From IMG/VR virus record IMGVR_UViG_3300024520_000047, positions 62,001-126,000 of that record: a stretch of 64,000 nucleotides of DNA, one strand, 5' to 3'. Made by a program: the position numbers and the translations under genes. Below, in pieces: positions 1,965 through 50,516 of the stretch (within the stretch, counting starts at the first letter, position 1; each line of letters opens with the position of its first letter). Below the pieces are notes generated by a model. That model was given only the letters and a program-made list of their open reading frames with translations, was not told the DNA's origin and did not search any database.

Positions 1965-2951
1965 ATGGCAGTAGCAAACTTATTATTATACGAAACAGGA
2001 TTTACGGGAACGGCATTTACTGTAGTTCATAATCTAGATAGGTTAAATCTAGATTATAGAATTGTATGTAGTGGGTCTAGTAGGCCTGATTTAATAGATA
2101 AAATTAATTTTACTACCGGAAATGAAAGAAATAGTTTTAGTGTTACTTTAACATCATCTAATGTAGGTATAATTCAATTATTAGACTATAATAAATATGC
2201 CCTTAATTTACCATCCCCAGAAAGAATTAATATAGGTTCACAGATGGGTTTTGTTAGTGGAACCACCCTTAATGGTACCACACTAGAATTAGGCAGAACT
2301 GGAGGTCTACCACCATTTTCAACAAACTTATCAAGTATAGATAAAGATAGGTATGTGACGGGTGCAACATTAAACTCAACAACTTTAGAATTAGAAAGAA
2401 ATGGTGGTTTGCCAGCTGTTACGGTTGATTTAGCAAATATTGATACAGATAAATTTGTTAGTGGTGGAACATTTAATACTGGAACAAGCAGTATAGATTT
2501 TATTGGTAATTCTTCGGATACGACATTTAGTGTGGGGATGGGGATTATTCAACACGATAGACAAAGCGTAAGTGCCACCATGGCTGGAGTAACACAGACA
2601 AGCTATACGGCAATACCAACACTTGACTTAACAACAGGCAATTTGGGGGGGACTGGAGATTATATTATGACTTTTAATTGTTATTTTGAAACGTCTAAAA
2701 AAGAGAGGGAGGTATCTTTTATAATGTCTGGTAATAGTTTTGGTCAATTATCTAATTCTGAAAGAGTTCAAAGAATTAGTAAGGATGAAGATAAGGACCC
2801 CTATACATTAGCCACCTCCGCTTATGTTGAAAATTTATCAAGTGGAAATGTAATTACGGTAGCATTCAAAAATAGTGGTAATGGTACTATCACCATATCT
2901 AATTCTACTTTAACCATAGATGGAATAAGAACAACAAATAACATATCATGA
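1965..2951 (+). CDS. Tail fibre-like protein with ~34-aa repeats and a C-terminal jelly-roll (BclA/C1q-like) domain
   Basis: Repeats: FVSGTTLNGTTLELGRTGGLP / YVTGATLNSTTLELERNGGLP / FVSGGTFNTGTSSIDF. The C-terminal strand pattern (GDYIMTFNCYF...LSSGNVITVAF...STLTIDGI) is typical of TNF/C1q-like heads. Confidence 0.55.
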   Translation: MAVANLLLYETGFTGTAFTVVHNLDRLNLDYRIVCSGSSRPDLIDKINFTTGNERNSFSVTLTSSNVGIIQLLDYNKYALNLPSPERINIGSQMGFVSGTTLNGTTLELGRTGGLPPFSTNLSSIDKDRYVTGATLNSTTLELERNGGLPAVTVDLANIDTDKFVSGGTFNTGTSSIDFIGNSSDTTFSVGMGIIQHDRQSVSATMAGVTQTSYTAIPTLDLTTGNLGGTGDYIMTFNCYFETSKKEREVSFIMSGNSFGQLSNSERVQRISKDEDKDPYTLATSAYVENLSSGNVITVAFKNSGNGTITISNSTLTIDGIRTTNNIS

Positions 2952-2952
2952 T

Positions 2953-3687
2953 ATGAATTATAATTTATTTGGATACGATATAAATGGTGAAACGGTGGGT
3001 GTTGATTTACAAAGTTGGCACTTAGAAGATTTAAATGGTAACGAGTCCTTTGTTTTGGTTAGTGGTCAAACATTAAGTGGGTATACAAATATTACCTCTA
3101 TAGAAAATATGTATAATTTAGGTATTAAACCTTGTGATACATATCAAACATGGCAAAAAGGTGTGAGATTATGTGGTTATGAAACTGGTTGGTCAGCGAT
3201 GACAAATACAGAAAAAGATTATATTATTGATGCATATGCTTATCCTGAAGGTTCTACAGAAATAATAACTTATTTAATGAGCTCAAAGGGAATGACACAA
3301 AATGAAGCCGAAAGTTATTTAATTAATAAGTGGCATACTTACTGGAATAGTTTCTTAGAAGATTGCCCACAAAGATGGAGTAACGCAGCTAAAGTTACTG
3401 TGGGGTATTTACCGTTTAGTGCATCATCACAATTATTAGACACAGTAAATGTTTTAGTTGATAAATACTTAATTGCTGGGAGACTAGGTATCGGCTATGG
3501 GGACACAAGTGATGGTTTAATGAATTTTATTATGTCGTCAAGTGGTTACGTTGGAAACGGATTAGAAGAATATTGTGTGGCACACGGTTTCATTTTGAAA
3601 AAAAATGATTATAATAGTTTTAGAAATGATTTACAAAATACAATTATTGACCCTTATTTTTGGTCAGAAATTGAACGGTACATCTAA
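2953..3687 (+). CDS. Hypothetical protein, possibly a fibre-associated or assembly protein
   Basis: 244-aa ORF starting 1 nt after the fibre gene. Function is inferred from position only. Confidence 0.45.
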   Translation: MNYNLFGYDINGETVGVDLQSWHLEDLNGNESFVLVSGQTLSGYTNITSIENMYNLGIKPCDTYQTWQKGVRLCGYETGWSAMTNTEKDYIIDAYAYPEGSTEIITYLMSSKGMTQNEAESYLINKWHTYWNSFLEDCPQRWSNAAKVTVGYLPFSASSQLLDTVNVLVDKYLIAGRLGIGYGDTSDGLMNFIMSSSGYVGNGLEEYCVAHGFILKKNDYNSFRNDLQNTIIDPYFWSEIERYI

Positions 3688-3713
3688 ATAATTTTTTAAA
3701 ACTTTTTAAGCTA

Positions 3714-4370
3714 GTGGAAACAACAATTAAATTTAAAATGGTGGATACTTGTAGTATCCAACTGGGAGACCACTTTAATACTATGGTAGGTAATTATATA
3801 ACCATAGCAAAAGTCATAAACCCAGATAGAGTAATACTTCACCACGATAATGAAAATCATAAGTATATTGAGGCTAATCAAAAACAATATTACGGTTTAA
3901 TAGAAGCGTTAGCAAATAGTAATCTATTAAAAAATAATAGTAAAATTGTTGACTTAGGGTGTGGCCTATGTACAACACTATATAATTTAAGTTTACAATT
4001 TTTACATTATAATATAAATGCCAATTTTTATGGAATAGAACATAATAAAGAGTTAATAGATACTTTTACTAATTATTTAAGTCCCTTATGGACTAGTAAT
4101 AAACCGTCTTTATCCTTAGAAGATATAATGAAAAGTGACCTAACCAATTATGATTTAATTTTATCATACCAACCACTTAAAGGTGATAACGTTAGAAACA
4201 TGTATAATAAAATTTCTAATGAAATGAAAAGTGGTTCTATTTTTTATGAACACAGACATAAGGAGAAGGAATGTAGGGAAATATTAAATAATTGTATGTC
4301 TAAAAATAACATAGAACCTATAACTTTGCTATTTGGGGGTGAAAAACAACCTCTATTTATAAAAAAATAA
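3714..4370 (+). CDS. Class I SAM-dependent methyltransferase
   Basis: Motif I IVDLGCG, acidic end of beta2 FYGIEHN, then EDIMKSDLTNYDLILSY and MKSGSIFY. Confidence 0.8.
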   Translation: METTIKFKMVDTCSIQLGDHFNTMVGNYITIAKVINPDRVILHHDNENHKYIEANQKQYYGLIEALANSNLLKNNSKIVDLGCGLCTTLYNLSLQFLHYNINANFYGIEHNKELIDTFTNYLSPLWTSNKPSLSLEDIMKSDLTNYDLILSYQPLKGDNVRNMYNKISNEMKSGSIFYEHRHKEKECREILNNCMSKNNIEPITLLFGGEKQPLFIKK

Positions 4371-17687: not shown

Positions 17688-18482
17688 TTACTGTATATAA
17701 TCTAACAAAACTCTACTTTCGTTACGTAGTTTTCTTAAAGCCTTTTCTTTTATTTGTCTTACTCTCTCTTTTGTTAAATTAAAATCTTCACCAATATCCG
17801 ATAAAGTTCGTGGGGTTCCACTTAATCCAAAATAATCAGATATGATAATAATTTCTCTTTCATCTAAAATACCCATTATCCTTTTTAATTCATTTTTAAA
17901 TTGTTGGGTGGTGTCCCCGATATCTTCTGGATTTTTTGCATCCTCATTTTTAATTAGAGATAATAATGTGTCACCATCTTCATTAATAGGTTTTCCTAGA
18001 TTAACAGTATAAGGTAAATTAGATAACTTATCGTTTAACATACCCCCGTCTTCTCGTTCATTTTTTTTAGCTCTATGTAATTCTTGAACTACATTTGCAG
18101 GTAATCTTATTGTCCGTGCATGTTCATTTAAACATTGGAGGATAGATTGTTTAATCCACCACACCGCATAAGAAATGAAACGATACCCCTTTGACCAGTC
18201 GAAATTATTAATGGCTTTCATTAATCCATAATTTCCTTCCGCTATCAGGTCTGGAAAATCAACTCCTTGATTTTGGTATTCTTTTGCAACACTAATTACA
18301 AATCTTAAATTACCCACCATTAATTCTTCTTCAATTTTCTTTTTTTGTTCTGGGCTTGGGTTATTTAACATAATATGTGCAAGACATTTTTCTCGTTCTA
18401 CCGTTAATACATCTAATTTTCTCACATCTTTCAAATAATGTGAAATTTCATCTTGGTTAATAAATGGTCCTGTTTTTTTCAT
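17688..18482 (-). CDS. rpoD: Phage-encoded sigma-70 family factor (RpoD/SigA-like, no region 1.1)
   Basis: Region 1.2 ISHYLKDV; region 2 NLRFVISVAKEY...DLIAEGNYGLMKA...FISYAVWWIKQSI; region 3 RTIRLP; region 4.2 LTKERVRQIKEKALRKLR. Confidence 0.92.
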   Translation of the reverse strand: MKKTGPFINQDEISHYLKDVRKLDVLTVEREKCLAHIMLNNPSPEQKKKIEEELMVGNLRFVISVAKEYQNQGVDFPDLIAEGNYGLMKAINNFDWSKGYRFISYAVWWIKQSILQCLNEHARTIRLPANVVQELHRAKKNEREDGGMLNDKLSNLPYTVNLGKPINEDGDTLLSLIKNEDAKNPEDIGDTTQQFKNELKRIMGILDEREIIIISDYFGLSGTPRTLSDIGEDFNLTKERVRQIKEKALRKLRNESRVLLDYIQ

Positions 18483-18560: not shown

Positions 18561-19094
18561 TTATTTACCACTAACTGAATCTAGGAATTTTTTTTCATCT
18601 AAGGTCAATGAATCTATACCTTTATCGTAAATTTTTTCTAAAACCTCGTCCAAAGTATAAGTCTTTTTTGTACTTTTATTTACTGCTTTATTTATAAATT
18701 GATTAGTATATTCTTGTAATGTTTCATTAATGTGATATAAATTTTCTCCTAATTTTTCTTTAACAATATCTTCATCTCGTTTTAAAGTATTACCTCTTAA
18801 ATTAGTTAAATGCTTTTCAAGTTCTTCATCTAACCTCATTCCTAATTTACGTGGTTTAGGTACTAAAAAATAACTAAGAATATTTTCATCAAAAGTAGTA
18901 TTTAAATAAAAATGGATGTCTTCTAAAGTATCATAACTTTCAAAATGTGCCAATATCAGATTATCGTGATGAACATATTTTAAATATGGTCCACCAATAA
19001 CAAACCCTAAAGTACTGACTATTTGGTTTAAAGAGGTTTTAATATCTTTAAAATCTCCTAAAATAAATAAAAGATAACTTTTTTTTCTTTTCAT
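18561..19094 (-). CDS. Hypothetical protein with a C-terminal DUF6576-like motif
   Basis: C-terminus LDEVLEKIYDKGIDSLTLDEKKFLD, as seen at the end of Bacteroidota rhomboid-family proteins. Confidence 0.7.
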   Translation of the reverse strand: MKRKKSYLLFILGDFKDIKTSLNQIVSTLGFVIGGPYLKYVHHDNLILAHFESYDTLEDIHFYLNTTFDENILSYFLVPKPRKLGMRLDEELEKHLTNLRGNTLKRDEDIVKEKLGENLYHINETLQEYTNQFINKAVNKSTKKTYTLDEVLEKIYDKGIDSLTLDEKKFLDSVSGK

Positions 19095-19116
19095 ATCTAT
19101 AAATAGTTTTATTTAA

Positions 19117-19148
19117 CAAATATAGTAATATTTATTAGTATAACCAAA
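19117..19148 (-). promoter_or_regulatory. Bacteroidota primary-sigma promoter (-33 TTTG / -7 TAnnTTTG)
   Basis: The minus strand reads TTTG-N20-TATATTTG upstream of 18561..19094 and the sigma gene. Confidence 0.7.
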
Positions 19149-19165
19149 TTAATTTTATAAAAATT

Positions 19166-21676
19166 ATGTCCGATAATTTAATGCCACAATATCATTTTGA
19201 TGATTCAAAAGATACTCACCGTATTGGTGTTAAAAAAAACAAATTAACACATCATCGAGACCCCGAAGATAATGTAAAGGAGTTTGAGTTAAATACGGGT
19301 GTACCCGTGGAAAAATACGGTAAAGATGAAAATCGTATAACATACGATAGTGCGTCATATGAAGGAGAACCATGGTTTATTAGTAAATCATTTAATGATG
19401 AGGAAACCAATAAAAGGCCTTTACACCCCACAAAAGATTATTTACACCCTCATGATAGTCACACAGGTGATGACCATTTAGAAATGGGGACTGGTAACTA
19501 CTATCCCCAATATAAAGTGCCTTTTATGGATAATAATAATGTAGATAGTGTAAATTATGATGAGGATGGGAAATTAAAATTAGATAAAAAAATAAATGAA
19601 ACCATTTCACCTTCTGTCAATATTTATAATAAAAATAAAAATAATAATAGTATGAGTAATTTAACTGAACAAATAGATAGAATTAAACAAATGATTCTAT
19701 TCAAAGAAGGCATGAGTTTTAAGGATGTAAAAAACTTAACTGAACAAGAAAAATCCGACTCTACAGCTGTTGCACCATCTTCAGATGGTGGTGATTCAAG
19801 TGTTACTGTAGACAAAGCAGAACCTTCTGTAGGTGCAGCAAAAGCTGCAGAGGTCTCTAAACTAACTAAGTCAGCGGAGAGGGAAAAAACCCCATTAGTA
19901 GAACCCTCTAAGGAAGAGCCTTCTAAGGAAGAACCAAAAGAGGAACCAAAAGAGGAACCAAAAGAGGAACCAAAAGAGGAACCAAAAGAGGAACCAAAAG
20001 AGGAGCCAAAAGAGGAGCCAAAAGAGGAAGAGCCGGTTGAGGAAGCTCCTGAAGAAGCCCCTGCAAACCCAACCACAGTACAATTAACACAACCCATTAT
20101 CGCGACTGTTACAGGCGTAAAAGAAGGTCTAGCATCTATGTTATCTGACCCTGAAGTACAACGAGCCATTAATAATATTAAAAACTTTAAAGCGGACCCA
20201 GAGAAAAAAGCCACCTTATATGATGAATTTATAGCGGCCTCCCGACATTACGGAGAGGTACCAGGTACAATCGGAGTGGACCAAGAAAAAACTGAAGCTT
20301 ATAATGATTATGTTTCAAAATATGTTCCTTATTATGCACTAGCAATACCTGAAGGTCAATTAAGTAGAGCTAACACATTAGACGCTACTATGGAAAATGC
20401 TAATGTAGGGTTGGATAATATTATTGACGCTGGGGTGGGATTAGATTACGCATACACTCTGGGTAAAACAGCAGGTGCTAACGCTTGGATGGCGTATGCT
20501 GCGTTATCACAATTAGTAAATGCTAATATTTACATAGAAAGAGCAAATTATTTAGCTAGTGATGAAGGTCAAGCTGCATTCGAACAAGCAAACACAGATA
20601 ATGTTAATTTTTATGGTACTTACATTACGCCTAATACCCAAGAGTATTGGTTACCTAATGTTTATCCAGAATATTCTACCCTAAGTAGTGATATCGGCAC
20701 TATGGAAAGTAATTTTACCTACACCGCTCCTGAACCTGCTCCATCTGAAGAAGAGGGTCCACGAGGGGAGAAACCTACAGAGGAAGAAGAAGAAGGCCCA
20801 GACAAAGAAGAGAGCCCTAAAGGAGAATCATCTAAATCTATTATTATACCATTTCAGGGTACTAATTATGAATTAAATACTGGTGGTATTTCAAGAGATA
20901 GTAAATTTACAAAAAATGACGCTACAATAAAATCTGGAAAAGAAGGACCAGAATTAACTCTAAATGCAGAACACGCGAAATACGGTAAAGGATATTATAA
21001 TGGTGTAATGAACCCAGATAATAATGTATTTTATGTAACATTTTATAATGATAGAGGTGATGGTCAGAACAAATATAAAATAGAAGCAAAATTAAGTAAA
21101 TATAAAGTTAAGAGTAGACAAAAAGCCCCAGCTAGAACAAGTAAAACAGCTATGAGTCGTGGTTCATATGATTCACCAATGGGTATAGTTGGTACTAGTG
21201 GTAAATTTACCGGTGTAAGTCCAAAAGCCATGGGTCCTTTTAATCAAGACCCATATGCCCAACAATCATCCAACGCTGAAGAAGAAGGTGATGACGAATC
21301 TAAAAAGAAAGAAAATTTAGCAGAAAGACGATTACCTAGAGGATATTATAAAAATAGAAAACCTAAAGTTATGAAAAGACCTAAACAATTAACAGAAGCA
21401 CCAATTAGAAAATCTAAAGGAAAAAAAATTATTAAACTTAGAGAATCAGATTTATATCGGATTGTAGAAAGAGTTCTTAATGAAAATAAAAAAGGTAAAG
21501 GATGTGCAGAATCTGAAGGTGGTTCTGGATGTATCAAAAAAGGAAGTTATACAGATAAATCTGGTAAGAAATATACTTGGCATATCTTAAATAATAAAAA
21601 AGGTGGTATCTGGAGAGGTTGTACTAGTAGAAAAGATTGTGAAGAAATATTAGATGCCTTCCACGCTAACTCTTAA
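19166..21676 (+). CDS. Large acidic low-complexity protein, probable head-packaged protein; possible second start at 19652
   Basis: 836 aa with EEPK repeats and LTEQIDRIKQM and KLRESDLYRIVERVLNE motifs. TATTTAT precedes both 19166 and 19652. Confidence 0.75.
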   Translation: MSDNLMPQYHFDDSKDTHRIGVKKNKLTHHRDPEDNVKEFELNTGVPVEKYGKDENRITYDSASYEGEPWFISKSFNDEETNKRPLHPTKDYLHPHDSHTGDDHLEMGTGNYYPQYKVPFMDNNNVDSVNYDEDGKLKLDKKINETISPSVNIYNKNKNNNSMSNLTEQIDRIKQMILFKEGMSFKDVKNLTEQEKSDSTAVAPSSDGGDSSVTVDKAEPSVGAAKAAEVSKLTKSAEREKTPLVEPSKEEPSKEEPKEEPKEEPKEEPKEEPKEEPKEEPKEEPKEEEPVEEAPEEAPANPTTVQLTQPIIATVTGVKEGLASMLSDPEVQRAINNIKNFKADPEKKATLYDEFIAASRHYGEVPGTIGVDQEKTEAYNDYVSKYVPYYALAIPEGQLSRANTLDATMENANVGLDNIIDAGVGLDYAYTLGKTAGANAWMAYAALSQLVNANIYIERANYLASDEGQAAFEQANTDNVNFYGTYITPNTQEYWLPNVYPEYSTLSSDIGTMESNFTYTAPEPAPSEEEGPRGEKPTEEEEEGPDKEESPKGESSKSIIIPFQGTNYELNTGGISRDSKFTKNDATIKSGKEGPELTLNAEHAKYGKGYYNGVMNPDNNVFYVTFYNDRGDGQNKYKIEAKLSKYKVKSRQKAPARTSKTAMSRGSYDSPMGIVGTSGKFTGVSPKAMGPFNQDPYAQQSSNAEEEGDDESKKKENLAERRLPRGYYKNRKPKVMKRPKQLTEAPIRKSKGKKIIKLRESDLYRIVERVLNENKKGKGCAESEGGSGCIKKGSYTDKSGKKYTWHILNNKKGGIWRGCTSRKDCEEILDAFHANS
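19928..20023 (+). repeat. Coding 12-bp tandem repeat, 8 units (EEPK)
   Basis: Eight GARGARCCAAAA units, preceded by two EPSK variants. Confidence 0.95.
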
Positions 21677-21700
21677 ATAAGATTAAAAACCAAAACTATT

Positions 21701-21763
21701 ATGTGTGACTGTAAAGAATGTAACTGTGGTACAAAATGTAAATGTACTTGTTGCAATTGTTAA
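21701..21763 (+). CDS. Metallothionein-like micropeptide, 20 aa with 9 Cys (not in ORF track)
   Basis: MCDCKECNCGTKCKCTCCNC*. It has an A-rich leader, starts 24 nt after the upstream stop and is followed by a terminator. Confidence 0.7.
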   Translation: MCDCKECNCGTKCKCTCCNC

Positions 21764-21780
21764 AAACTAAATAATTAATT

Positions 21781-21809
21781 AAAAGGGGATTGAACGATTC
21801 CCTTTTTTT
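21781..21809 (+). terminator. Rho-independent terminator
   Basis: AAAAGGGGAT-TGAACG-ATTCCCTTTT followed by more T residues. Confidence 0.8.
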
Positions 21810-21832
21810 ATTTATATTTATAACTAAAGACC

Positions 21833-22174
21833 ATGGAGAAACCATACATATCAGAATTAGACATTAAGAAAGCCGTCAAAAAAGTATTGGCAGAAGACAA
21901 TAGATTGCCCGTAGACGACTATGAGTTTGAGATGGACGATTCTACCTATGATGACATTTATGAACACCAAGGACCTGTAAGACACTTTAGGGGGTCTATC
22001 TACTATGATGGGTATGTTCCTGAGACTGATGACGTAGAGTATGACCGGAAGGTTGCACAAAAACTTTTAGAGTATGAAAGAAATAAATTAGGAAGTGCTG
22101 AAACGTATGTTGGGGGTGTTGGTTTTAAAAATCGTGGTAACCTTATTGAGCCTTTCGATAATATGGATTTCTAA
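21833..22174 (+). CDS. Acidic hypothetical protein
   Basis: 113 aa with TATTTATA at 21815-21822. N-terminus ISELDIKKAVKKVLAED. Confidence 0.7.
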   Translation: MEKPYISELDIKKAVKKVLAEDNRLPVDDYEFEMDDSTYDDIYEHQGPVRHFRGSIYYDGYVPETDDVEYDRKVAQKLLEYERNKLGSAETYVGGVGFKNRGNLIEPFDNMDF

Positions 22175-24489
22175 ACAATACAGGACACATTACTTACTTT
22201 CTTAACAGTAATTGTCTGGTCTGACCATTCCTTAATTAAATTATTATGAGAAATTACAAAGATTCTTTCAAAGTAATCTTTAATCTTCATAAAGAACTTG
22301 CCCACCAATTCTAAATTTTCATCACTTACTTTTGCAAATGCTTCATCAAAGCAAACAATATTAGGTTTAGGTAATGCACACACTTTAGATAATACAGAGC
22401 GTAAAGCTAATGACGCTATAGTTTTTTCATAACCACTACCAGAAGACATTAATTTCTCAATAGATGTATCATTGTCTATCATCCAAAATTCCAATTCATT
22501 ACGGTCATTAATTCTTAATTGTAATGTAAATTCACAACTATCCGATAGTAACCTATTTAATTCACTATTAAGATAGGGAATTGTATTTCGTAATATAAGT
22601 TTAGAAATTCCATTTTTCCCATAAGCAATTAAATAAGCCTTAAATATTTTATCAACCTCTTCTTCTTTTTTAATTTCATTAATCCTACCAACATTTTCTT
22701 TAATGCTAACTTTATGTTGTTTTATGTTTCCCTTAGTTTCACTAATTTTAATTTTAAAACCATCTATCTCAGCGGTTAATGTATCCAATAAAGTTCTAGC
22801 GGAAATAAGTTTCTTTTCTATTTCTTGATTTTCCTCTAATTTAATTTTGTTAGATTCCCACTCTTTGAGAGTGTTTTGTTTTTGAATTAAATTCAAACTT
22901 TCTTCTTTAATTTCTAAATCAATTTTTATTTTACGTAATTTATCTCTTTCATAGGTGTCCCACTTTATCTCTATATCACTTAATTCCATATTTTTTTCTA
23001 ATAATTCTTTTCTAGATGTTTGTAAGGTAAGTAATTCCTCAGTTATTTCGTGAAGTTCTTTAAGTTTCTTTTCAATTTCAGAACTGTGGTCCACATCATC
23101 TAATTTTCTATTACACGTTGGGCAAATTTCACCATCCTCTAAAGCTTGTATTAATTCTTCTAATTCACTAACCTGTTTGGTTGTTAATTTTTCTTGTACT
23201 TCTAGGTTTGTTAATTCTTTTTTTAATTCAGTATGTTTTTCTTCATCGTGTTTGGTAGGAGGTTTAGATATGTGAATTTCCTCTAATCTGGTTTGGTGTG
23301 TTTCAATTTTATTCTCTATATTGCCAATTTCTGTTTTAATATTTGTAGGATTAACTTTTAATAATTCGGAGGCAATCTCATTATGTTTGCTATAAAGTAA
23401 TTTTTCTTTATACTCCATTCCATTTTCATACCTCTCGTTAAGTTCTATAATTTTATTTTCATACTCTTCAATATTTTCTATAAATGCACCACTTTCATCT
23501 TCATAATTTTTATTTTCTTCTTTTAAAGTTTGTGTGTCATATAAATTAGAAATTAACTTTTTATTCCATTCAGAATATATTTCTTTAGCGGTTTCTTCTT
23601 TTTTTCTTAAATGGTCTAACCCTATAAATCTTGTTAATATTTGGCCTCTATGTGTGGGTTTAGCTTCTAGTAAGTCTTCCAGATTATTGGATGTTGTAAG
23701 TATGGTTAATAAAAAATCATCCATAGTTCCTATAGATTTTTTTAAAAACTCTTCTGTTTCTCGTCGTTGTTCTCCTTGTAAATTTTGTAAGGTGCCTTCC
23801 GCTAATCTTTTACTCAAGTTAAGTTCAGTCCTAACACTCCACTCACCCTTTTTAGTTAATTTTCTTATTATTCCTCGTTCTATAATGTAATTTTCACCAT
23901 CAATTTCTACCTCACCCTTAACTAATACGATATCTTTATCGGTAAACCTATTAAAGACCTCAATAGCTTTATTGGACTTAGTAGTTACATTAAAAAATAA
24001 AAAAAGAAGAAGGTCTACAGTTAATGTAGTTTTACCACCAAAATTAGAAGGTGTAGAATCTATGACCGTTATACCATTATATTTAGTAAAATCTATTCTA
24101 TTATTTTCACCAAAAGAAAGAAAATTATTAAATTCAATCCACTTAATAAACCATTTCTTATGTTGTGATATATCTTGGGTTGATACTTTTTCCTCCACTC
24201 TAGAATCTAACTTCATTAACTTATCCCAATTAACATCTACATCGTGGTCTTTTAAAAATTCTTTTACTAGTTGCTTTTGGTAGTTGGGGTCAACGACATT
24301 TTCTGTGACAGCTTGGGTTGTGGTGGTTTCTCCAATTCCATTAATGCGAGTCACCACATTAACCCTTTCAGAATTATATTTCTTTCTAAAATAAGTTTTT
24401 AATCTTTTTATTTTTTCTTGGGTGAAATTTTCGGGACTATCTTCCCATATAACTTTTATATAGGGGTTATCTAAAGTGGTAGGGTCCAT
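22171..24489 (-). CDS. sbcC: Rad50/SbcC (T4 gp46-like) ATPase with an extra ~110-aa N-terminal domain
   Basis: IEFNNFLSFG, Walker A variant SNFGGKTT, a coiled coil with CPTC zinc hook, signature variant SGSGYEK, Walker B IVCFDE and H-loop ISHN. Confidence 0.9.
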   Translation of the reverse strand: MDPTTLDNPYIKVIWEDSPENFTQEKIKRLKTYFRKKYNSERVNVVTRINGIGETTTTQAVTENVVDPNYQKQLVKEFLKDHDVDVNWDKLMKLDSRVEEKVSTQDISQHKKWFIKWIEFNNFLSFGENNRIDFTKYNGITVIDSTPSNFGGKTTLTVDLLLFLFFNVTTKSNKAIEVFNRFTDKDIVLVKGEVEIDGENYIIERGIIRKLTKKGEWSVRTELNLSKRLAEGTLQNLQGEQRRETEEFLKKSIGTMDDFLLTILTTSNNLEDLLEAKPTHRGQILTRFIGLDHLRKKEETAKEIYSEWNKKLISNLYDTQTLKEENKNYEDESGAFIENIEEYENKIIELNERYENGMEYKEKLLYSKHNEIASELLKVNPTNIKTEIGNIENKIETHQTRLEEIHISKPPTKHDEEKHTELKKELTNLEVQEKLTTKQVSELEELIQALEDGEICPTCNRKLDDVDHSSEIEKKLKELHEITEELLTLQTSRKELLEKNMELSDIEIKWDTYERDKLRKIKIDLEIKEESLNLIQKQNTLKEWESNKIKLEENQEIEKKLISARTLLDTLTAEIDGFKIKISETKGNIKQHKVSIKENVGRINEIKKEEEVDKIFKAYLIAYGKNGISKLILRNTIPYLNSELNRLLSDSCEFTLQLRINDRNELEFWMIDNDTSIEKLMSSGSGYEKTIASLALRSVLSKVCALPKPNIVCFDEAFAKVSDENLELVGKFFMKIKDYFERIFVISHNNLIKEWSDQTITVKKVSNVSCIV

Positions 24490-41210: not shown

Positions 41211-44200
41211 TTAAGAATATTGGCTTCCTCCACCATAAGTTTTATTATTTTTACTGGTACCCAATACGACACCTCTAACATCATTTTGTGATACTTTATT
41301 ACCATATTTACTACCATCCCTACCTAACATTTTAATCCATTGACTTTGTGTTTTTTCTCCACAAGGATAATATTCTGGTGTCGTCTCCGTTGCACAACAC
41401 CATACTTGTGCTCCCAAATCATCTTGTGGTGGTACTTCAACAAAAGTATCTGTTCCACATTTATAATATGCCTTTCTACCATAAGTTAATGATGGTTTGG
41501 TTATATTATAATATGACGATTCCGTATTAATAACTTCATCATTAATTATAAGTTGTCCCGCTACAGTGTCAATATTTACATCTTCAATATTGCTAGGTGT
41601 AACTGAACTACCCAATGAATTAAGAATGCTGGTACTCAACGGTATAGTATTTAATTTATTGGTGTTTTGTGTCGCTGTAGGTAATATAGGTGATATTATT
41701 GGAAACACTCGACTAGTCCCTTTAACTCTAACTTTAGTATCTAATACATACATATACTCAGGATTAGATAACATTGGAGTTGATGTATCTTTAGATACTG
41801 GCAAATTAAGTTGTACCGTCATATTATTAAAGGTTATCATTTTATTTGCATTAATTTTTAAATTACTGGATTCACCACTTTCTATTTTTTTAACCCAATT
41901 ATTAGTTTTTTTAGAAGACTCAACTAAGGTGGTATTATCAATTAAAGTTTCTGACTTATTTGCTAAATCTACATATGAAAAAGATAATAAATTACTTAGG
42001 GTAATTGGTTCCGTCCTATAGTCTGTACTGATATCAGCAGTAGTGGTTTGTGTGGTGTATAAGGCACCCATCTCATTATTGGTATCTACTGGTTGTAATT
42101 GTCCATTAGTGTATAACGGTGTTATTTGTTTTGTAATGTCATTAGAATCCCAATATAATTTAATATCATTCACCAACGCTGATTGACAACTTTCTTCCGT
42201 AATAAGAAAATATGGGTATTCAGGATTACTACTATCTACTATGTTGGTACCTACGCGTACAGTCATTGTGGTTGCTGTTGTTGCGGTACTAGTCCATTTT
42301 GGGGTCGTTAATGATTCAATTTGTGCAGATGCAAATAACCTTTCACCTTCATTTAAAGTTATAGTTCCCGTATCTAAACTTGCAATAATATTTTTCTCTA
42401 TAAGAATTTCATCTGGTAAATTTGTAGTTATTGAGTTATAGTCGTAGGTATTTCTGTTTTCTTCTGTTTTATTAACTGGTATTGTAAGGAAAGTGTCCGC
42501 GTTTGAATTATCTGTCTCATTAGCTCCAACGGTATAACTAGCTAATGTAGTAGTCGCTGAAGTAACACCAGATAAGGATTTTTGTATAGTTAATCTAACT
42601 TGGAAATCTAAAATACCTGAATCCGCATTAAGTCCATCTACTGGAAAATATGTATTACTTTTGGTTCTACTGTTAACAAATGTTCCTTCTGTATTTCTAG
42701 TGGGTCTGAGTATATTACTCTTCCCATTAATAATAGCTGAGTTTAATAATGAATAATATTCATAATCATTACTTGGTACATTACCCTTATCTTTTGTGTA
42801 TGTTTTATATCTATCCAAATAATTCCACCATGTGGGGTCTTGATATTGGATATTAATTGTTGTTGTAAGTCTTGCCCTTAAACATATATCTTTAGTAGCT
42901 TGATAATATGAATATTGTGTTGGTGTTCTCTCCACATAATAAGGTCCACAATTAGTCCATAAAGCATTGGTTGGAACAAAGGGTATAAATCCTTTTGGGT
43001 TATTTATAAATTTAAATGGTTGTGATAATATTCTATCTGAATAAAATAATCGTGTATTTAAATTTATATCGTCTCCCACCATACATATGTCATGTACTTG
43101 GTCAGATGAAACTCTGGTTTGTGAAGTATCTGTATAAGCACTAAGATTTGTATAAGCTGAATACACTATACTTGTAAATGCACTCAATGTACTCCCTGTT
43201 TGTGTTTCCAAATAATCTCCCCAAGAACCTTGTGTGGTTAAGATAATGGAATTATTACCTGTGGGTATTGGTGCTTCACCAGATATGTTTTGTGAATTTG
43301 TAGCACTTCTTCTTAACTGAGTAGTTAAAGTAAAACCTTCAAACTCACCATCACTATTATAATTTATAGTCTTGGGATTAAATACTCCATTGGTGAGTCC
43401 TACACATCTGGTGGCCCACTCTTCATAATTACTATAAGTTCTGGTAGATGTACCTACTTTTTCTGTACCACCCGCTATTGATTTTTTTCTTAGACTAACA
43501 CCAAATTGTTTTAAATCACTAGGTGTTGTAAAACTAACCACCGTATTTCTATTTCTTTGGGTTTCTATAGTGTCTAACCATCCACCCAAATAAGTAACTT
43601 CTTTGCCGTCTTCAGTTTTAAAAACCTCAGATGTTGGTCCTGTAGTGGTACCTACTAATGTGGGACTGTTATACGGTTGTGGTGCACTAGATGTAAATGG
43701 GTCGAGTGTTGGTATTAAATAAACCTGACTATCTACAATTTCATAATCATTTACATTTAATTCTGTTTGATTTTTTAATAATTCTTTTGATATGTCTACT
43801 TCCAGTCTATTTCCAGTTACATTCCCTTTTGCAAAATCTACAACAGTACTTTTAATTACCCCAGTTTGATGTCTAGCAGCTGCACCTAAATTTGTTGGAC
43901 ATGAATTAGTTACTGGTACAGTTGTAAATATCTGGCTATTATCTACACCAGTATTCTGAAATTGTAAATAAGTACACTCATGTGTTCCACACACTACTTG
44001 TAATTGCATATTATAACTCCCAACTCTATCGTCACTTATAAAATTATAGTTAGGTGTATCTACAATCCAATCCATTTCTTGAAAAACTAAAGCTCCATTA
44101 ACACCAAACTGGCCTTGTGGGGGGATGATGAAATATCTATCACGTATGACGGGTGTGGTTTCTATAGCATTAGTACCGGTTCCATTATCCGTTAAATAAG

Positions 44201-47200
44201 TGCTATTACTTAGTTTTTCAAGATAAAATTTATTTCTATCTGAGGACATACTTTGAATTTGAAAACTTAGTGTGGTTGTTTCTTCAAACAAAGTTTTTAG
44301 TGTTGTTGAAAAACCGGCATAAGAGGTGTCAGATGTATCTATGATTGTATTTGTTTGGACATCTGGTATGTGAAGAAAATACCTTACTGCTGGATTATTG
44401 GTGGGGTCGGATATATCTCTATATTCCCATCTATAAAATTCTATTTGTGTACTATCAGTAATATTTAACTCATATTTTACCCTTCCTTCAAATATAAATA
44501 ATTTATTTTGTTGGCGATATCTATCAAAATATATAACCATCTCATCTGCCAAACAACAAGGGTTTAATATTGCTTTAGACCACTCAAGAGACTTTGCTTC
44601 ATTAGTTATGGCCCAAAATGTATCATCGGTACCTGTAGTCCACCAATTAGGTGGTGAGGTTTGTCCCGCATCTTCATTCATTTTGAAACCTTGTATATGT
44701 GCAGGAACATCATTAACACTAATTAAATAAAAATCTAACTCTACATTTTGTAATATAGAATTGCCTTCACCACTATAATCTGTTTCTTGGCATTCACAAA
44801 CCGCAACGGGGTCTTCACCCGGTGAAGGGGAATCTGGATTACATGCGTCTTCAGTGTCGTTGGTTACTACTACTATTTCTTCCGCCACACATTCCACCCA
44901 ACATTTTGAGTGTCCACCATCACATAAACTTAATGGAAATTGTGTGGTACCACAGTTATTAATGTTTGTCATTGTAAACGCATGACCCGCTAATAATGTA
45001 TTTTCTGGACAACATACCGTATCCCCTTCTTGATAGAAAATGCCAGCGTTCTCTCTACTCCAAACATTATTCCCAGTGCACGCACATGGGTCAACCATTT
45101 CCTCACAAATTTTGTATGTGGACTCAAAACAGTCTTGCCCTCCTACATTAAAAATACCATCTTTAAATGTTACTGGGTCTACAGTATAGGTAAATCCTGT
45201 AGGTATTGGGTTTTCTGGTATAACTATTTCCTGATATGGGTCACAATTATCACCTTCTGTAAAATTATTTCCACCTAAGAATGGTATACCACCGGGTTCA
45301 ATATCTACTGGTTGCCACCCACATGGTGGAGGCCAACAAGGTGGACCTGCAGGTGGTCCGGGTGGACCCCCCGGAGTAGGACCAGTAGTGGATGGTGGAG
45401 TTTCTTCTGGGTCTGGGTTGTAATTATCAGGATTACCATCAGTACCACTTTCACCACTAACCCATTCATAGAAATTACCATTTTGAACTATTATATCTCC
45501 AAACTCATACGTATCATTTATGTTCCATAGTGGTGCTGTAAATTCTTCATTTCCACAAACTCTTATACAAATATCACAGTTTACTAATGAAAGTGTACTG
45601 TTACCTTCTAAGAAAATAGCTAAGTCTTGTTGGAATTGTTGTTCAAAAAATAAAGCTGTGTCGGTACATACATTACGTGCCTGTGCAGTACACGTATTAC
45701 AAATATTAGTAACACAATTTGGGGTGCCATTACATCTATGACATCTTTGGTTTATACATGGATTAGGTGAAAAATTTGTGGGACAATCAGGACTAAAACA
45801 ATTTGGGTCGGTACAGTCCCCACACAGTGTTGTACATCCAGATACACCTAAATCATATTTTGCTCCCCATCCAAAATTATTAAGTCCAGAACCGACATAA
45901 CCACTCATTGTATTTGTAGCGGTTAATGCGGTATATGGGTTATGTAAGGTTATTGCTGTTAACGTTCCGCCAACTGTTGTTACAGTGGGATTTTCAATTA
46001 ATTGTGATGGGTCTACAGTCCCAGAAAACATTGCACCATAAACATGTAATGGAAACATCATTGTCTCATTCTGGTCTTGGTGTACAATGGGATACATAAA
46101 CGAATTAAATGTTGTGTATGATGCATGTGCAGAAGTAAAAGCACTGAAATCCTCAGAATATGGTGGAGTGGGTTGTATTACTGCGGTTGTTGTATTAATA
46201 AGTGGTGAGTTCCAATCATCCATTGGATTGTAAGGTAACCCTTGGGCGAGCTCCCACGCGGGTGGTGACCCCGTTTTGTCATTTGCCTCACATTGTGCCC
46301 CCGGGTCGAATGTCCCACCCCTACTTCCGTGGTAAGCGTTAACCACAGCCCCCGAAGATTCAACAACAAATGTAAACATTAAAACATTGGTAGATAAATT
46401 AGGTGGAAATGTATAAAATCCACCACTAACACCGGTCCCACCAACACAACTACCAACACTTGTTCCAGTATATGTGGTACCACTTGGTAAATTAGAAAAA
46501 TTATTTTGGGAGCCATATAATGTATTTTGCCAATTACAACATGTCGGAGTGTCAAAGGTCCCACCTGATATCGGAATAGTTGCCCATCTCAACCACCTTT
46601 CATCAGCTAAGGGTATGTGGTAAACATTACCTGTAAAACCAGATAAAGAAGTTGCCCAAGTGTTTATGCTATCTCTGGTTGCTAGAGCTGTATCAAATGG
46701 GTTTGATGATGTATCATAAAAAGCGTATATATCTGTATCTAGAGGAACTGGGGTTACTTGTACATTTGTTACATTTAAACAAATTTCTGACGTAAAATAA
46801 TGTGGGTCAACACCGTTATCTGAATTCCACGCGTCATTTCCAGCTGGATACGTAACACATTCTGTTGGTACAGTACGAATACACGAATCGGTACATAAAT
46901 CGTAGGTGTATCCAGAGGGGCATGTGTTGGTTTCGGTATTAAATATACCACCTACCTCATCTAAACTAGAAAAGATGGTGTTGGCTGTATATGCACTCAC
47001 CCCTGCGGGCGTAGCAAATATATCAAAATCTGTGTTTACAGTAAAAGTACCTACAGGGAATGGTCCAACTATTTCACAACCAAAAGACGCTGGACCAAAT
47101 GCTGTCGCGTTTGCACCTTCTAATAAGAGTGTATTACTTCCAGCATTTAAGGTAACGGGCCAAACCCACCAATAATTAAAATTTTGAAGAGCCCCAGCTG

Positions 47201-50200
47201 TACCATCCCAAGGATTTTCAACTATCTGTGTACCATTTAATGTAGCTCTTATTTGGTTATCCCCCGCCATTCCAAAAAGATATTCCCCATCAGCTGGTGC
47301 AGTTACACATCTTGAAAACCCAAAGAATTGAGTGGTACTAGTCATTGTTGCATTATTAACTCCGACTTGATTTAGTCTACCTTGGGTGGTTGTTCCAGCG
47401 GCGTCCCAAAACGGATTAGCCACCGTACCAATTACATTAAAATTAGCAGCTGTAGCACCACTTCCACATGTTGTGTAAGTACCCGGTATACAAAAGCGGG
47501 CACCAAATTGGCCATAACTACTAACCCCATCTGCCTTTACAATAGTCTCCCCTGTGGTTACAGTACTTGCGGTGTAGGTGACGCATGACTCACTTACTTC
47601 ATCATACGTATATCCCTCTGGACAATCACATATCTCTTCTCCCGTACCACACGGACCTTGCACAATTATACAATTTGGGTCTGTTAAGTTGGGTATATTT
47701 GGGTCTGTAATATCATTTATTAAATAATAACTTAATAGGTGATTTGGGTCCATTACATCTTGGGTAATACCACTTAGGATAGAGGTCATATCACCTAACC
47801 AGTCTGAGGTGTCTGGTATATCATATATTGTAGTACTACTATAATATATGTCGCCCATATATTCAGTACCACCTAAAGTTATTTTATTTTGCCATGTTGC
47901 ACCACTAAATAAAAGTCCACCACAAGTATTTGCCGCTTCTACTAATATATCATTAAATATGGGCTCACAACATGTTACAAATGAACCAAAACATTCTGTA
48001 TCATCACATAACGGTTCGTGTTTATAGACAAATTTATCTCTATGGAAAATAGAATTTTCATACTTAATACCACCCGTCCAAATAGTAGTTGCTGGAATAA
48101 ATTGTTCCACTAATCTAATCCAATAATCTCCAAGATTTTCTACATACGCAATCATTTTTTCGTATGTGTACTTATTGCTAGGAACACCACATACATTTTC
48201 ACTATCTAAATAATTTAAGTATATATTCAATAATGTGGGGTATCCACCACCATGTCCGTCATCTATAGTTAATCTATTTTTAACATTTATTAAAACTCTC
48301 CAAAATTTTTCAGCAAATTCAAAGAAAGATAATTTAGACGCATCTACAACAATTTCTGTCCAATCTGGACCACCTATGCCGGGATACGGGGATGATAATG
48401 CTGTAGGACCAAATGGACAACCATACCTTTTAGATAGATTCCACACATCCCACTCTAAGCCTTGACCAACATTAAGATATAATTCAACATTTTTAACATT
48501 TAATACAAGTTTATCTGTATTGGTGTAATAATAAGTTCCTCTATCTCTTAAATTATATTGTCTTAAATTGTAAGTGTCTTTTTTTACCCATGATTTTTTA
48601 TTGTCTGGCGTTCTAACAATTGGAAATCCTAAATTCATATCGGGAAATTTCCTATATAAATCCAAATATGGTTCTCCGTAAGTAAATTTATTTAATTTAG
48701 TTTTTAAAACAGGCGTATTTCCAGTAAACACGGAAGTGGCGGTATCAACAACCCTTTTACCCCTATGTTCAGTAGTCTCTTCAAACCACCCTTCTCCAGC
48801 TTGAAAATAAGCATCTGGACCATATCTTGGTTTTGTAGGAAACCCTCTTTCATCCACAGGATAAGCATACCTACCAACCTTAGTTTCTTTAACGACTGTT
48901 TCGTACCCGTATGTAAATCCAGTAATGGTAATGGGTGGGAATGTACCCGATAATTCAGTGAAATATGAATCTCTAACTGGTACTTCTTCAGTGTAGGTTC
49001 CATCAGAAATATACGCTATTCGTTCATTAAACTGTTTCATGTTAATTGGTGCTCCCGCCACATAAACATGTTCATTAAATTCAATTAGAGCTTCAGGTGC
49101 ACCAATAAATCTAAGCATAAACTCAATGCTTTTTCTGGTACCCTTAGATTTAAATAAATAAGCGGTATTAACTAATAGTCGTCTATATAATTCTGTATCT
49201 AATTCAGCTGGTGTGGGATTAGTAACTTGCCCTTCATATAACGTATCTGGATTTCTAGAAAAAATAGAATCTAAAAATCCCTTGTTTTCAATTGCTGACG
49301 GTGTTTTCCAACCTAGAGTTCTTGCAAAGTTTTTAAGTAAGGTATTGGGCATATTATCTACACCATCATAAGTTACATTGGTCATGTAAACTAATCCGTC
49401 TATATATTTCTTTATTACATCAAAACTTCTACCATATATCTTCAATACCTTATCTACTTTTTCATCTATAGTATCAAACTCCTTAAATGCTGCAGTAGTT
49501 AAAAATCTAGAAATTAAATTCGTTTTATATGAATCAAATGAATCACCAATATCATATAAATCTTCCAAATATTTTTCAAATGGGAAACCATTTATCCTAA
49601 TATTCCAAAAATCTGTAGTAGGCCAAGTAATTGACTTAGTAGCTTGTATTATTTTTCCACTATCTGTTTCGGTAGGTTGTTGGAATTTAGCGGTGTACTT
49701 GGGTGTACTTTTTCTTTCCACCAAAAATTTCTCCATGTCATTCAACTGGTCAAATGCCTTTTCTGTTTCTGTAGTGGTGGGTTTAATATAAAAGGAATCT
49801 ATTGTGGTAACGGAATTACCAAATGGTTTTCCGTCAACAGCTATAGTTAAAAACCCATTTGTTGTATTTCCTGATGTGGGTTTTAAATATTGTAAGGGAT
49901 ATTCTTTATCGTTATAAAATAACGCATATTTCTTAAAAGATAAAACTAAATTTCTAAGTTCAATACTATCACTAGAAGTTAGTGTATCTTTAGCTTGTTT
50001 GGTATAATCAATACTAAAAGGATTATATATCGTATATAGATTTAAATCTATGAATGTTTGATTGTCACTGGGTTCATATGTGATATTAACTGCGGTGTCT
50101 CCAGTATTATAGTCTGACCATGTTCTTACATTATTAAATAAGATGGCGGCAGGAAATTTCTTAATTACATTTTGGACTGCAACTTTAATTCGTTCTCTTA

Positions 50201-50516
50201 ATGAACCATATAAGGCGTAATTACTTACTTTTGACCTATCAAAATTTATAAAAACCTCTAAACTATTACTAACATATAACTTTGCTTGTGTTATATCCTC
50301 TATCTGTAAGGTATCTAATGTTATCGGTTCGGAAAAATTACCTAAGGAAAAATCTCTGGAATCTTTTGGTGCGGCATTCGAGTATATGCTAAAATTACCC
50401 AGGGTAAATTGAGAAGTGCCGTCCGTAAATTGGTTTCCAACTAACTTATCCCCAAATAGGTCTGCTCCATTACCCGGAATTTGTGGGGTATTACTATTAT
50501 AAATACCGTTCGCCAT
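41211..50516 (-). CDS. Giant (3101 aa) baseplate wedge/tail protein: P2 gpI / T4 gp7-like core with appended Cys-rich, vWA-like and carbohydrate-binding-like modules
   Basis: LLKNFARTLGW...YRRLLVNTAYLFKSKGTRKSIEFML; CPEGYTYD..C and CPSGYTYD..C; IYAFYDTSS; WNINDTYEFGDIIVQNGNFY. Confidence 0.7.
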   Translation of the reverse strand: MANGIYNSNTPQIPGNGADLFGDKLVGNQFTDGTSQFTLGNFSIYSNAAPKDSRDFSLGNFSEPITLDTLQIEDITQAKLYVSNSLEVFINFDRSKVSNYALYGSLRERIKVAVQNVIKKFPAAILFNNVRTWSDYNTGDTAVNITYEPSDNQTFIDLNLYTIYNPFSIDYTKQAKDTLTSSDSIELRNLVLSFKKYALFYNDKEYPLQYLKPTSGNTTNGFLTIAVDGKPFGNSVTTIDSFYIKPTTTETEKAFDQLNDMEKFLVERKSTPKYTAKFQQPTETDSGKIIQATKSITWPTTDFWNIRINGFPFEKYLEDLYDIGDSFDSYKTNLISRFLTTAAFKEFDTIDEKVDKVLKIYGRSFDVIKKYIDGLVYMTNVTYDGVDNMPNTLLKNFARTLGWKTPSAIENKGFLDSIFSRNPDTLYEGQVTNPTPAELDTELYRRLLVNTAYLFKSKGTRKSIEFMLRFIGAPEALIEFNEHVYVAGAPINMKQFNERIAYISDGTYTEEVPVRDSYFTELSGTFPPITITGFTYGYETVVKETKVGRYAYPVDERGFPTKPRYGPDAYFQAGEGWFEETTEHRGKRVVDTATSVFTGNTPVLKTKLNKFTYGEPYLDLYRKFPDMNLGFPIVRTPDNKKSWVKKDTYNLRQYNLRDRGTYYYTNTDKLVLNVKNVELYLNVGQGLEWDVWNLSKRYGCPFGPTALSSPYPGIGGPDWTEIVVDASKLSFFEFAEKFWRVLINVKNRLTIDDGHGGGYPTLLNIYLNYLDSENVCGVPSNKYTYEKMIAYVENLGDYWIRLVEQFIPATTIWTGGIKYENSIFHRDKFVYKHEPLCDDTECFGSFVTCCEPIFNDILVEAANTCGGLLFSGATWQNKITLGGTEYMGDIYYSSTTIYDIPDTSDWLGDMTSILSGITQDVMDPNHLLSYYLINDITDPNIPNLTDPNCIIVQGPCGTGEEICDCPEGYTYDEVSESCVTYTASTVTTGETIVKADGVSSYGQFGARFCIPGTYTTCGSGATAANFNVIGTVANPFWDAAGTTTQGRLNQVGVNNATMTSTTQFFGFSRCVTAPADGEYLFGMAGDNQIRATLNGTQIVENPWDGTAGALQNFNYWWVWPVTLNAGSNTLLLEGANATAFGPASFGCEIVGPFPVGTFTVNTDFDIFATPAGVSAYTANTIFSSLDEVGGIFNTETNTCPSGYTYDLCTDSCIRTVPTECVTYPAGNDAWNSDNGVDPHYFTSEICLNVTNVQVTPVPLDTDIYAFYDTSSNPFDTALATRDSINTWATSLSGFTGNVYHIPLADERWLRWATIPISGGTFDTPTCCNWQNTLYGSQNNFSNLPSGTTYTGTSVGSCVGGTGVSGGFYTFPPNLSTNVLMFTFVVESSGAVVNAYHGSRGGTFDPGAQCEANDKTGSPPAWELAQGLPYNPMDDWNSPLINTTTAVIQPTPPYSEDFSAFTSAHASYTTFNSFMYPIVHQDQNETMMFPLHVYGAMFSGTVDPSQLIENPTVTTVGGTLTAITLHNPYTALTATNTMSGYVGSGLNNFGWGAKYDLGVSGCTTLCGDCTDPNCFSPDCPTNFSPNPCINQRCHRCNGTPNCVTNICNTCTAQARNVCTDTALFFEQQFQQDLAIFLEGNSTLSLVNCDICIRVCGNEEFTAPLWNINDTYEFGDIIVQNGNFYEWVSGESGTDGNPDNYNPDPEETPPSTTGPTPGGPPGPPAGPPCWPPPCGWQPVDIEPGGIPFLGGNNFTEGDNCDPYQEIVIPENPIPTGFTYTVDPVTFKDGIFNVGGQDCFESTYKICEEMVDPCACTGNNVWSRENAGIFYQEGDTVCCPENTLLAGHAFTMTNINNCGTTQFPLSLCDGGHSKCWVECVAEEIVVVTNDTEDACNPDSPSPGEDPVAVCECQETDYSGEGNSILQNVELDFYLISVNDVPAHIQGFKMNEDAGQTSPPNWWTTGTDDTFWAITNEAKSLEWSKAILNPCCLADEMVIYFDRYRQQNKLFIFEGRVKYELNITDSTQIEFYRWEYRDISDPTNNPAVRYFLHIPDVQTNTIIDTSDTSYAGFSTTLKTLFEETTTLSFQIQSMSSDRNKFYLEKLSNSTYLTDNGTGTNAIETTPVIRDRYFIIPPQGQFGVNGALVFQEMDWIVDTPNYNFISDDRVGSYNMQLQVVCGTHECTYLQFQNTGVDNSQIFTTVPVTNSCPTNLGAAARHQTGVIKSTVVDFAKGNVTGNRLEVDISKELLKNQTELNVNDYEIVDSQVYLIPTLDPFTSSAPQPYNSPTLVGTTTGPTSEVFKTEDGKEVTYLGGWLDTIETQRNRNTVVSFTTPSDLKQFGVSLRKKSIAGGTEKVGTSTRTYSNYEEWATRCVGLTNGVFNPKTINYNSDGEFEGFTLTTQLRRSATNSQNISGEAPIPTGNNSIILTTQGSWGDYLETQTGSTLSAFTSIVYSAYTNLSAYTDTSQTRVSSDQVHDICMVGDDINLNTRLFYSDRILSQPFKFINNPKGFIPFVPTNALWTNCGPYYVERTPTQYSYYQATKDICLRARLTTTINIQYQDPTWWNYLDRYKTYTKDKGNVPSNDYEYYSLLNSAIINGKSNILRPTRNTEGTFVNSRTKSNTYFPVDGLNADSGILDFQVRLTIQKSLSGVTSATTTLASYTVGANETDNSNADTFLTIPVNKTEENRNTYDYNSITTNLPDEILIEKNIIASLDTGTITLNEGERLFASAQIESLTTPKWTSTATTATTMTVRVGTNIVDSSNPEYPYFLITEESCQSALVNDIKLYWDSNDITKQITPLYTNGQLQPVDTNNEMGALYTTQTTTADISTDYRTEPITLSNLLSFSYVDLANKSETLIDNTTLVESSKKTNNWVKKIESGESSNLKINANKMITFNNMTVQLNLPVSKDTSTPMLSNPEYMYVLDTKVRVKGTSRVFPIISPILPTATQNTNKLNTIPLSTSILNSLGSSVTPSNIEDVNIDTVAGQLIINDEVINTESSYYNITKPSLTYGRKAYYKCGTDTFVEVPPQDDLGAQVWCCATETTPEYYPCGEKTQSQWIKMLGRDGSKYGNKVSQNDVRGVVLGTSKNNKTYGGGSQYS

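Follow-up and report, generated by a model that had tools for sequence, protein, structure and literature searches.

What is encoded in a stretch of 21 triplets, at the end of a phage transcription unit, in which nearly every second codon is a cysteine codon? The stretch is found in a 64-kb window (the whole stretch of DNA that was analysed, 64,000 nucleotides), which is part of the 245,874-bp IMG/VR contig 3300024520_000047. The window is from a phage, since it encodes baseplate wedge, virion structural, sigma factor and SbcC-like genes. The sigma-70-type factor is at 17688-18482, the baseplate wedge gene is at 61553-63406, and a 3101-aa ORF at 41211-50516 (-) lies among large minus-strand ORFs with few or no PHROG hits. 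An earlier note, made from the sequence alone, described the stretch as a hidden gene for a metallothionein-like micropeptide. The features of the locus are the following.

19166..21676 (+), upstream gene of 836 aa and unknown function, probably the first gene of the same transcription unit
21494..21673 (+), within it, the C-terminal domain of the 836-aa protein, with four invariant Cys and one invariant His
21677..21700 (+), 24-nt A-rich spacer and leader between the stop of the 836-aa gene and the start of the micro-gene, without a Shine-Dalgarno (SD) motif
21701..21763 (+), micro-gene of 20 codons plus TAA, with nine Cys in the pattern M-C-x-C-x2-C-x-C-x3-C-x-C-x-C-C-x-C-stop
21781..21813 (+), intrinsic terminator, made of a stem-loop at 21781-21806 and a T-run, which ends the transcription unit of the 836-aa gene and the micro-gene

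The sequence observation made in the earlier note was confirmed. The ATG is at 21701 and the TAA at 21761-21763, the translation is MCDCKECNCGTKCKCTCCNC, exactly as previously read, and nine of the ten TGY triplets in the stretch are in frame. When Cys codons were counted in every 20-codon window of all six frames, this was the only place with 7 to 9 of them, and the next best place in the 64 kb has 6. TGT plus TGC make up 0.030 of all trinucleotides, from which a binomial estimate gives about 3e-4 such windows expected by chance in the whole window. The A-rich leader is also typical of this genome, as had been claimed: only 1 of 40 genes in the window has an SD-like motif, and the 25 nt upstream of the starts are 48% A. 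The stem-loop and T-run are the only terminator-like site in 18900-22400 and the dominant feature of the predicted RNA fold. The terminator is conserved in three close relatives (loci L002, L003 and L005; family loci are numbered with the prefix L), whereas different terminator sequences occupy the same place in L022, L041 and L042.

To determine whether the ORF is conserved, degenerate DNA scans were performed. A back-translated pattern for the first nine residues found the ORF in three other large viral contigs, with synonymous changes (GAC to GAT, ACA to ACC), two replacements, and all Cys kept. A second pattern, which fixed only the ATG and the nine Cys codons, returned 62 viral stretches. 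Five of them are poly-Cys repeats, and the other 57, including the contig of the window, are ORFs of 19 or 20 codons that all stop directly after the last Cys, although the stop was not part of the pattern. The same pattern plus a stop codon was found in at least 120 metagenome contigs, many of them with TARA or "marine metagenome" names, and in 185,579 reference genomes there were two real hits, both Cytophagales MAGs. It should be noted that these contig counts include near-identical viruses from different samples. In total, there are 110 distinct coding sequences and 92 distinct peptides, all of 19-20 residues. Hence, conservation of the frame and the Cys pattern with synonymous change, which had been proposed beforehand as a check, was observed.

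These results revealed that selection acts on the peptide and not on the nucleotides. Every Cys position shows both TGT and TGC (for example 62/34 at C13 and 63/33 at C18), Ser12 is encoded by AGT 30 times and by TCA or TCT 28 times, a switch that needs two base changes, and both TAA and TAG serve as the stop. The spacer residues are almost only E, K, N, T, D, G, S and Q. Among 1077 non-Cys residues there is no His, one Arg and one Tyr, and 3.6% are hydrophobic, aromatic or Pro, against 41.7% in the proteins of the window. The pN/pS at the spacer codons is about 0.66, which is only indicative since the pairs compared are not independent, while Cys never changes in canonical members. In lineages that use SD sites, a GGAG-type motif lies 6-7 nt before the ATG in the examples read. 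On the other hand, the RNA of the ORF is not unusually structured (z = -0.74), seven family loci gave no Rfam match, and ARAGORN found no tRNA.

Since the pattern itself had forced the Cys, the scans were repeated with subsets of them left free. With C4, C7 and C9 free, 71 stretches were returned, the 57 canonical members plus 14 chance hits, of which 11 are out of frame and none is family-like. With C13 and C15 free, the result was 58 stretches, the 57 members plus one nine-Cys variant with shifted spacing. With C17, C18 and C20 free, 76 stretches were returned, and beyond the 57 members these were ten 20-mers ending CCCG that still have nine Cys, one 8-Cys member and several shorter peptides. 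All nine Cys are also invariant in the family alignment. Thus, nine Cys in a fixed skeleton is the dominant form within a somewhat wider set of related micro-peptides. In this set (L217, L220-L224, L226, L231, L232, L235; also L218, L219, L225, L227-L230, L234, L236), a sister subfamily of 20-mers ends CGCDCCCG, still has nine Cys, is preceded by an SD site and is followed by a gene starting MVAAVKAFADRHLERF, and shorter peptides of 15-19 residues share the MCxCxxCxC head and have 7-8 Cys.

Concerning the genomic surroundings, 216 loci fall into 143 distinct flank contexts, with 28 upstream and 16 downstream gene clusters, and the only constant feature is the peptide itself, so the peptide is the selected unit. 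In the SD-less contexts named here group A, the micro-gene is followed by a conserved hairpin, a terminator and a dehydrogenase-like gene, while the upstream genes vary. This is the largest context (42 cases; L009:3415-4776 (+) and 41 related contexts). The dehydrogenase-like protein has an N-terminal PF07992 match, belongs with phrog_12409, gives a weak match to the uncharacterised protein VP0956 (PDB 3nlc) and resembles uncharacterised FAD/NAD-dependent dehydrogenases. A search of GenBank phages found for it only genes of 25-28% identity, annotated as NAD(FAD)-utilizing dehydrogenase in Campylobacter phages and also present in unannotated gut phage contigs, so no cultured relative of these marine phages was found. 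In the SD-type contexts of group B, the order is a PorV/PorQ-family outer-membrane beta-barrel protein with a signal peptide (NF033709, E=2e-25; L054:8274-9143 (+) and 21 related contexts), the micro-gene, and a 126-136 aa membrane/coiled-coil protein, tightly packed and without a terminator. The PorV-like protein had no counterpart in GenBank phages by tblastn. In the group of the window, the upstream protein is 113-926 aa and often ends in a Cys4-His domain, and the micro-gene is followed by a plain terminator and then by either a co-oriented 113-118 aa gene or a convergent gene. A terminator follows the micro-gene in 40 of 47 group A contexts, 23 of 38 other SD-less contexts and 1 of 42 SD-type contexts.

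In the two Cytophagales MAGs the gene stands alone among ordinary cellular genes: a beta-lactamase-family protein, a PhoD-like phosphatase, a sulfatase and an ABC-F protein in one, and a PhoPQ-related protein, an amidohydrolase and an FGE-sulfatase in the other. In one Cytophagales lineage (L087, L112, L142 and L200), the chromosomal micro-gene (L087:2512-2574 (+)) lies 27 nt upstream of the PhoD-like phosphatase gene (2602-4233), whose product appears to be a lipoprotein, and a TAccTTTG box of the Bacteroidetes -7 type lies about 30 nt upstream of the micro-gene. This hints at a link between metal supply and phosphate scavenging, but it rests on a single lineage and was kept as a lead and not as evidence. 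The assignment of the phage hosts to Bacteroidota is likewise indirect, since it is based on the SD-less leaders, the PorV-family neighbour and the two MAGs.

Regarding the neighbours in the window, the 836-aa protein and the downstream 113-aa protein had no Pfam, PHROG or NCBIfam hit. Homologous upstream genes of 113-926 aa accompany the micro-gene in 21 contexts. The C-terminal domain of about 60 residues (GKGC-x5-GSGC ... W-I-NNK-GG ... C-S-x3-C ... H) is often, but not always, encoded directly upstream of the micro-gene. An alignment of 12 distinct sequences (the window and L002, L042, L103, L114, L117, L137, L152, L163, L178, L182 and L207) showed invariant C24, C33, C63, C69 and H77. Its AF2 model is a moderate one (pLDDT 75.6) and predicts a three-stranded sheet plus a helix, without a Pfam family or a PDB fold match, and the ESM Atlas was uninformative. 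The domain is absent from the upstream proteins of L109, L133, L141, L147 and L022. Moreover, a short motif of the type I-K-L-T-E-x-D-L-Y-K-I-V-D-R-V-L recurs at the N-terminus or just before the C-terminal domain of several otherwise unrelated small acidic proteins around the micro-gene (about 21434-21490 for the 836-aa protein and 21833-21900 for the 113-aa protein in the window, and the N-termini of the upstream proteins in L042, L055, L103 and L117), which could be a shared targeting or interaction peptide.

Group A also carries an RNA-like element of about 90 nt between the micro-gene and the dehydrogenase-like gene (L009:3294-3396 (+) and 27 other loci), which is not present in the window. 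It has a 5-bp hairpin with an invariant loop (GAUUCAUAGCC), 13 nt after the micro-gene, followed by a terminator hairpin with invariant CUGUGGC and UUUGG, and then UAUAUU. Three hairpin pairs show double compensatory changes, and only one cell in the five pairs fails to pair. The element has no Rfam match and is not a tRNA. By eye only, CAUAGC in the hairpin could pair with the invariant GCUGUG in the 5' arm of the terminator, as an antiterminator.

Is this family already known? Only 1 of 9 family peptides is present, without a name, in a collection of 15 billion predicted proteins, so the family is almost never called by gene finders and the claim that it is overlooked is supported. Megablast of the locus and tblastn of the peptide against GenBank phages gave nothing, the latter probably because of the low-complexity filter, and distant blastn gave only spurious AT-rich hits. 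No description of the family was found in the literature, within open-access papers and preprints, where metallothionein "auxiliary metabolic genes" in viromes from metal-rich sites are mentioned only in passing (PMC12917443, PMC13317609). Those papers share the idea that phages carry metal-sequestering genes, but neither describes a 20-residue peptide, and the present family has no such similarity, is below calling thresholds and was found mostly in marine-named samples.

The most likely explanation, with a probability of about 0.55, is that the ORF encodes a minimal metallothionein-type peptide. The peptides have the low molecular mass, the very high Cys content (45%) in conserved CxC, CC and CxxC motifs, the polar spacers and the lack of His, with almost no aromatic residues, that are expected of metallothioneins in the operational sense, and like bmtA genes they are easily overlooked because of their size (PMC3323870). 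After removal of the start Met, the roughly 19-residue peptide would use its nine thiolates (CxC, CxC, CxC and CCxC motifs separated by small polar residues) to wrap a metal-thiolate cluster, which by analogy with nine-Cys metallothionein domains would hold about three divalent ions (Zn, Cd, Co) or a larger number of Cu(I). The peptide would then buffer, store or hand over trace metal, or quench oxidants, in the infected cell. In this phage it is probably transcribed together with the 836-aa gene, as its position 24 nt after that gene and before the only terminator of the region suggests. The analysis establishes that the gene is real, that its peptide is under selection, that the Cys skeleton is invariant in canonical members, that the gene moves between unrelated contexts and that it occurs in both phages and Cytophagales chromosomes. 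On the other hand, translation in vivo, metal binding with its stoichiometry and metal preference, and the benefit to the phage are inferred.

Nevertheless, no significant similarity to any metallothionein family was found. The only database matches are metallothioneins, but all are far from significant: PF01439 (Metallothio_2) at E=3 and 9.2 bits, against a cut-off of 23, and wheat Ec-1 (PDB 2kak) at E=7 in a PDB profile search, whereas the single-sequence PDB search gave nothing. This is normal between metallothionein families (PMC3323870), but it means that membership rests on inferred chemistry. Moreover, no metal-homeostasis genes (sensors, pumps, chaperones) appeared among the neighbours examined. 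At 19-20 residues the peptide is shorter than any known metallothionein, the smallest fungal ones having about 22-25 residues, and it is carried mainly by phages. It shares with the vertebrate beta-domain, which binds three divalent ions, nine Cys and repeated CxC motifs with K, E, S and T spacers, but that domain has about 30 residues and a different order of Cys spacings, and no vertebrate metallothionein match was found in Pfam, so the likeness put forward in the earlier note is compositional and not homology. The bacterial BmtA/SmtA proteins are also prokaryotic cytosolic Cys-rich metal buffers, used by marine cyanobacteria where free Zn is picomolar, but they are larger and contain a zinc-finger fold (PMC3323870). 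They also use His as a ligand. No member of the present family has His, and a 20-residue peptide cannot hold such a fold.

The interpretation given in the earlier note is therefore only partly supported. A genuine, conserved and overlooked protein-coding micro-gene with metallothionein composition holds, and its position fits co-transcription with the 836-aa gene. However, metal binding, metal specificity and a role in infection remain inference, the term "late-type" for the 836-aa gene has no support, the family is not confined to phages, and being the last ORF before a terminator is not a family trait, since in SD-type contexts the gene sits inside operons.

Other explanations must be weighed against this reading, since Cys-rich composition alone also fits redox or disulfide chemistry, Fe-S binding or a zinc-knuckle-like protein ligand. 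A metal-free thiol peptide, acting as a sacrificial antioxidant, a disulfide-exchange buffer or a cysteine store during infection, is unlikely but remains possible. The same composition would fit it, as would the dehydrogenase-like neighbour in group A, but the strictly conserved spacing and the invariant count of nine are what cluster geometry demands and would not be needed by a thiol pool. In addition, that neighbour matched disulfide-oxidoreductase models only over short stretches far below their cut-offs, and a terminator separates the two genes. It is also possible, although somewhat less likely, that the peptide is a dedicated metal donor or partner that loads or stabilises the Cys4-His domain of the upstream protein or, in other phages, the CxCxCxxC N-terminus of a second, unrelated upstream protein family. 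Twelve distinct upstream proteins, of about 125 to 836 aa, end in that domain directly before the micro-gene. Nevertheless, the five loci listed above keep the micro-gene without the domain, and most contexts (group A, group B and the bacterial copies) have no Cys-rich neighbour.

The serious rival was a cysteine-sensing leader peptide, in which ribosomes would pause at the Cys codons when Cys-tRNA is scarce and change the folding of the downstream RNA, thereby controlling termination or translation of the next gene, as in the polycysteine leaderless short ORFs of mycobacteria (10.1101/834739). Those are also unannotated and very rich in Cys codons, and the order of short ORF, terminator and co-oriented 113-aa gene in the window, together with the hairpin, terminator and conserved downstream gene of group A, would fit. 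However, the mycobacterial ORFs are the first of operons at cysteine-metabolism loci, whereas here the ORF is usually last in its unit or stands alone. In 16 of 38 SD-less contexts without the hairpin there is no co-oriented downstream gene, in L092 the gene stands alone with its own terminator and a convergent neighbour, and terminators are almost absent after SD-type copies. The neighbours examined are unknowns, a PorV-family protein, a dehydrogenase and a PhoD-like phosphatase, none of them a cysteine-metabolism gene, and in the window only the terminator is predicted to form, without a competing fold. Furthermore, a sensor needs only Cys codons and does not explain the fixed spacing, the polar spacers, the AGT/TCN switch at Ser12 or the fixed stop. 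This reading is thus disfavoured for the family as a whole, although a secondary regulatory role in group A cannot be excluded. A precursor of a ribosomally made, post-translationally modified product, or an Fe-S ligand, is very unlikely: the small size and the Cys content would fit it, but no modifying enzyme (radical SAM, cyclodehydratase, lanthipeptide synthetase) or Fe-S assembly gene was seen among the neighbours scanned, which differ between contexts, and 20 residues show no leader/core architecture. Finally, although the genome is AT-rich and TGT is fairly common (2.2% of trinucleotides), a chance ORF or a TGT-rich non-coding motif is effectively refuted by the conservation of frame, start, length and stop across 110 distinct sequences with synonymous variation.

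This locus thus belongs to a new, widespread and overlooked micro-gene family of metallothionein-like make-up, and it is a clean example that conserved genes of 20 codons can be recovered from raw sequence by pattern and codon-level tests. The family is abundant in marine viral and metagenomic assemblies yet almost absent from protein databases, so a recurrent phage function is currently invisible. A more far-reaching possibility, which is tentative and judged somewhat less likely than not, is that this is the shortest metallothionein-type peptide known, in a family exchanged between marine Bacteroidota and their phages, with which phages would control the trace-metal (Zn, Cd, Co, Cu) or thiol economy of infected cells. 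That would be a new class of auxiliary gene with possible weight in marine trace-metal cycling. If the peptide binds metals, it would set a new lower size limit for a metal-thiolate cluster peptide, give a chemically tractable 19-20-mer for cluster chemistry, and add trace-metal handling to the host processes that ocean phages reprogram, in an environment where free Zn is picomolar (PMC3323870).
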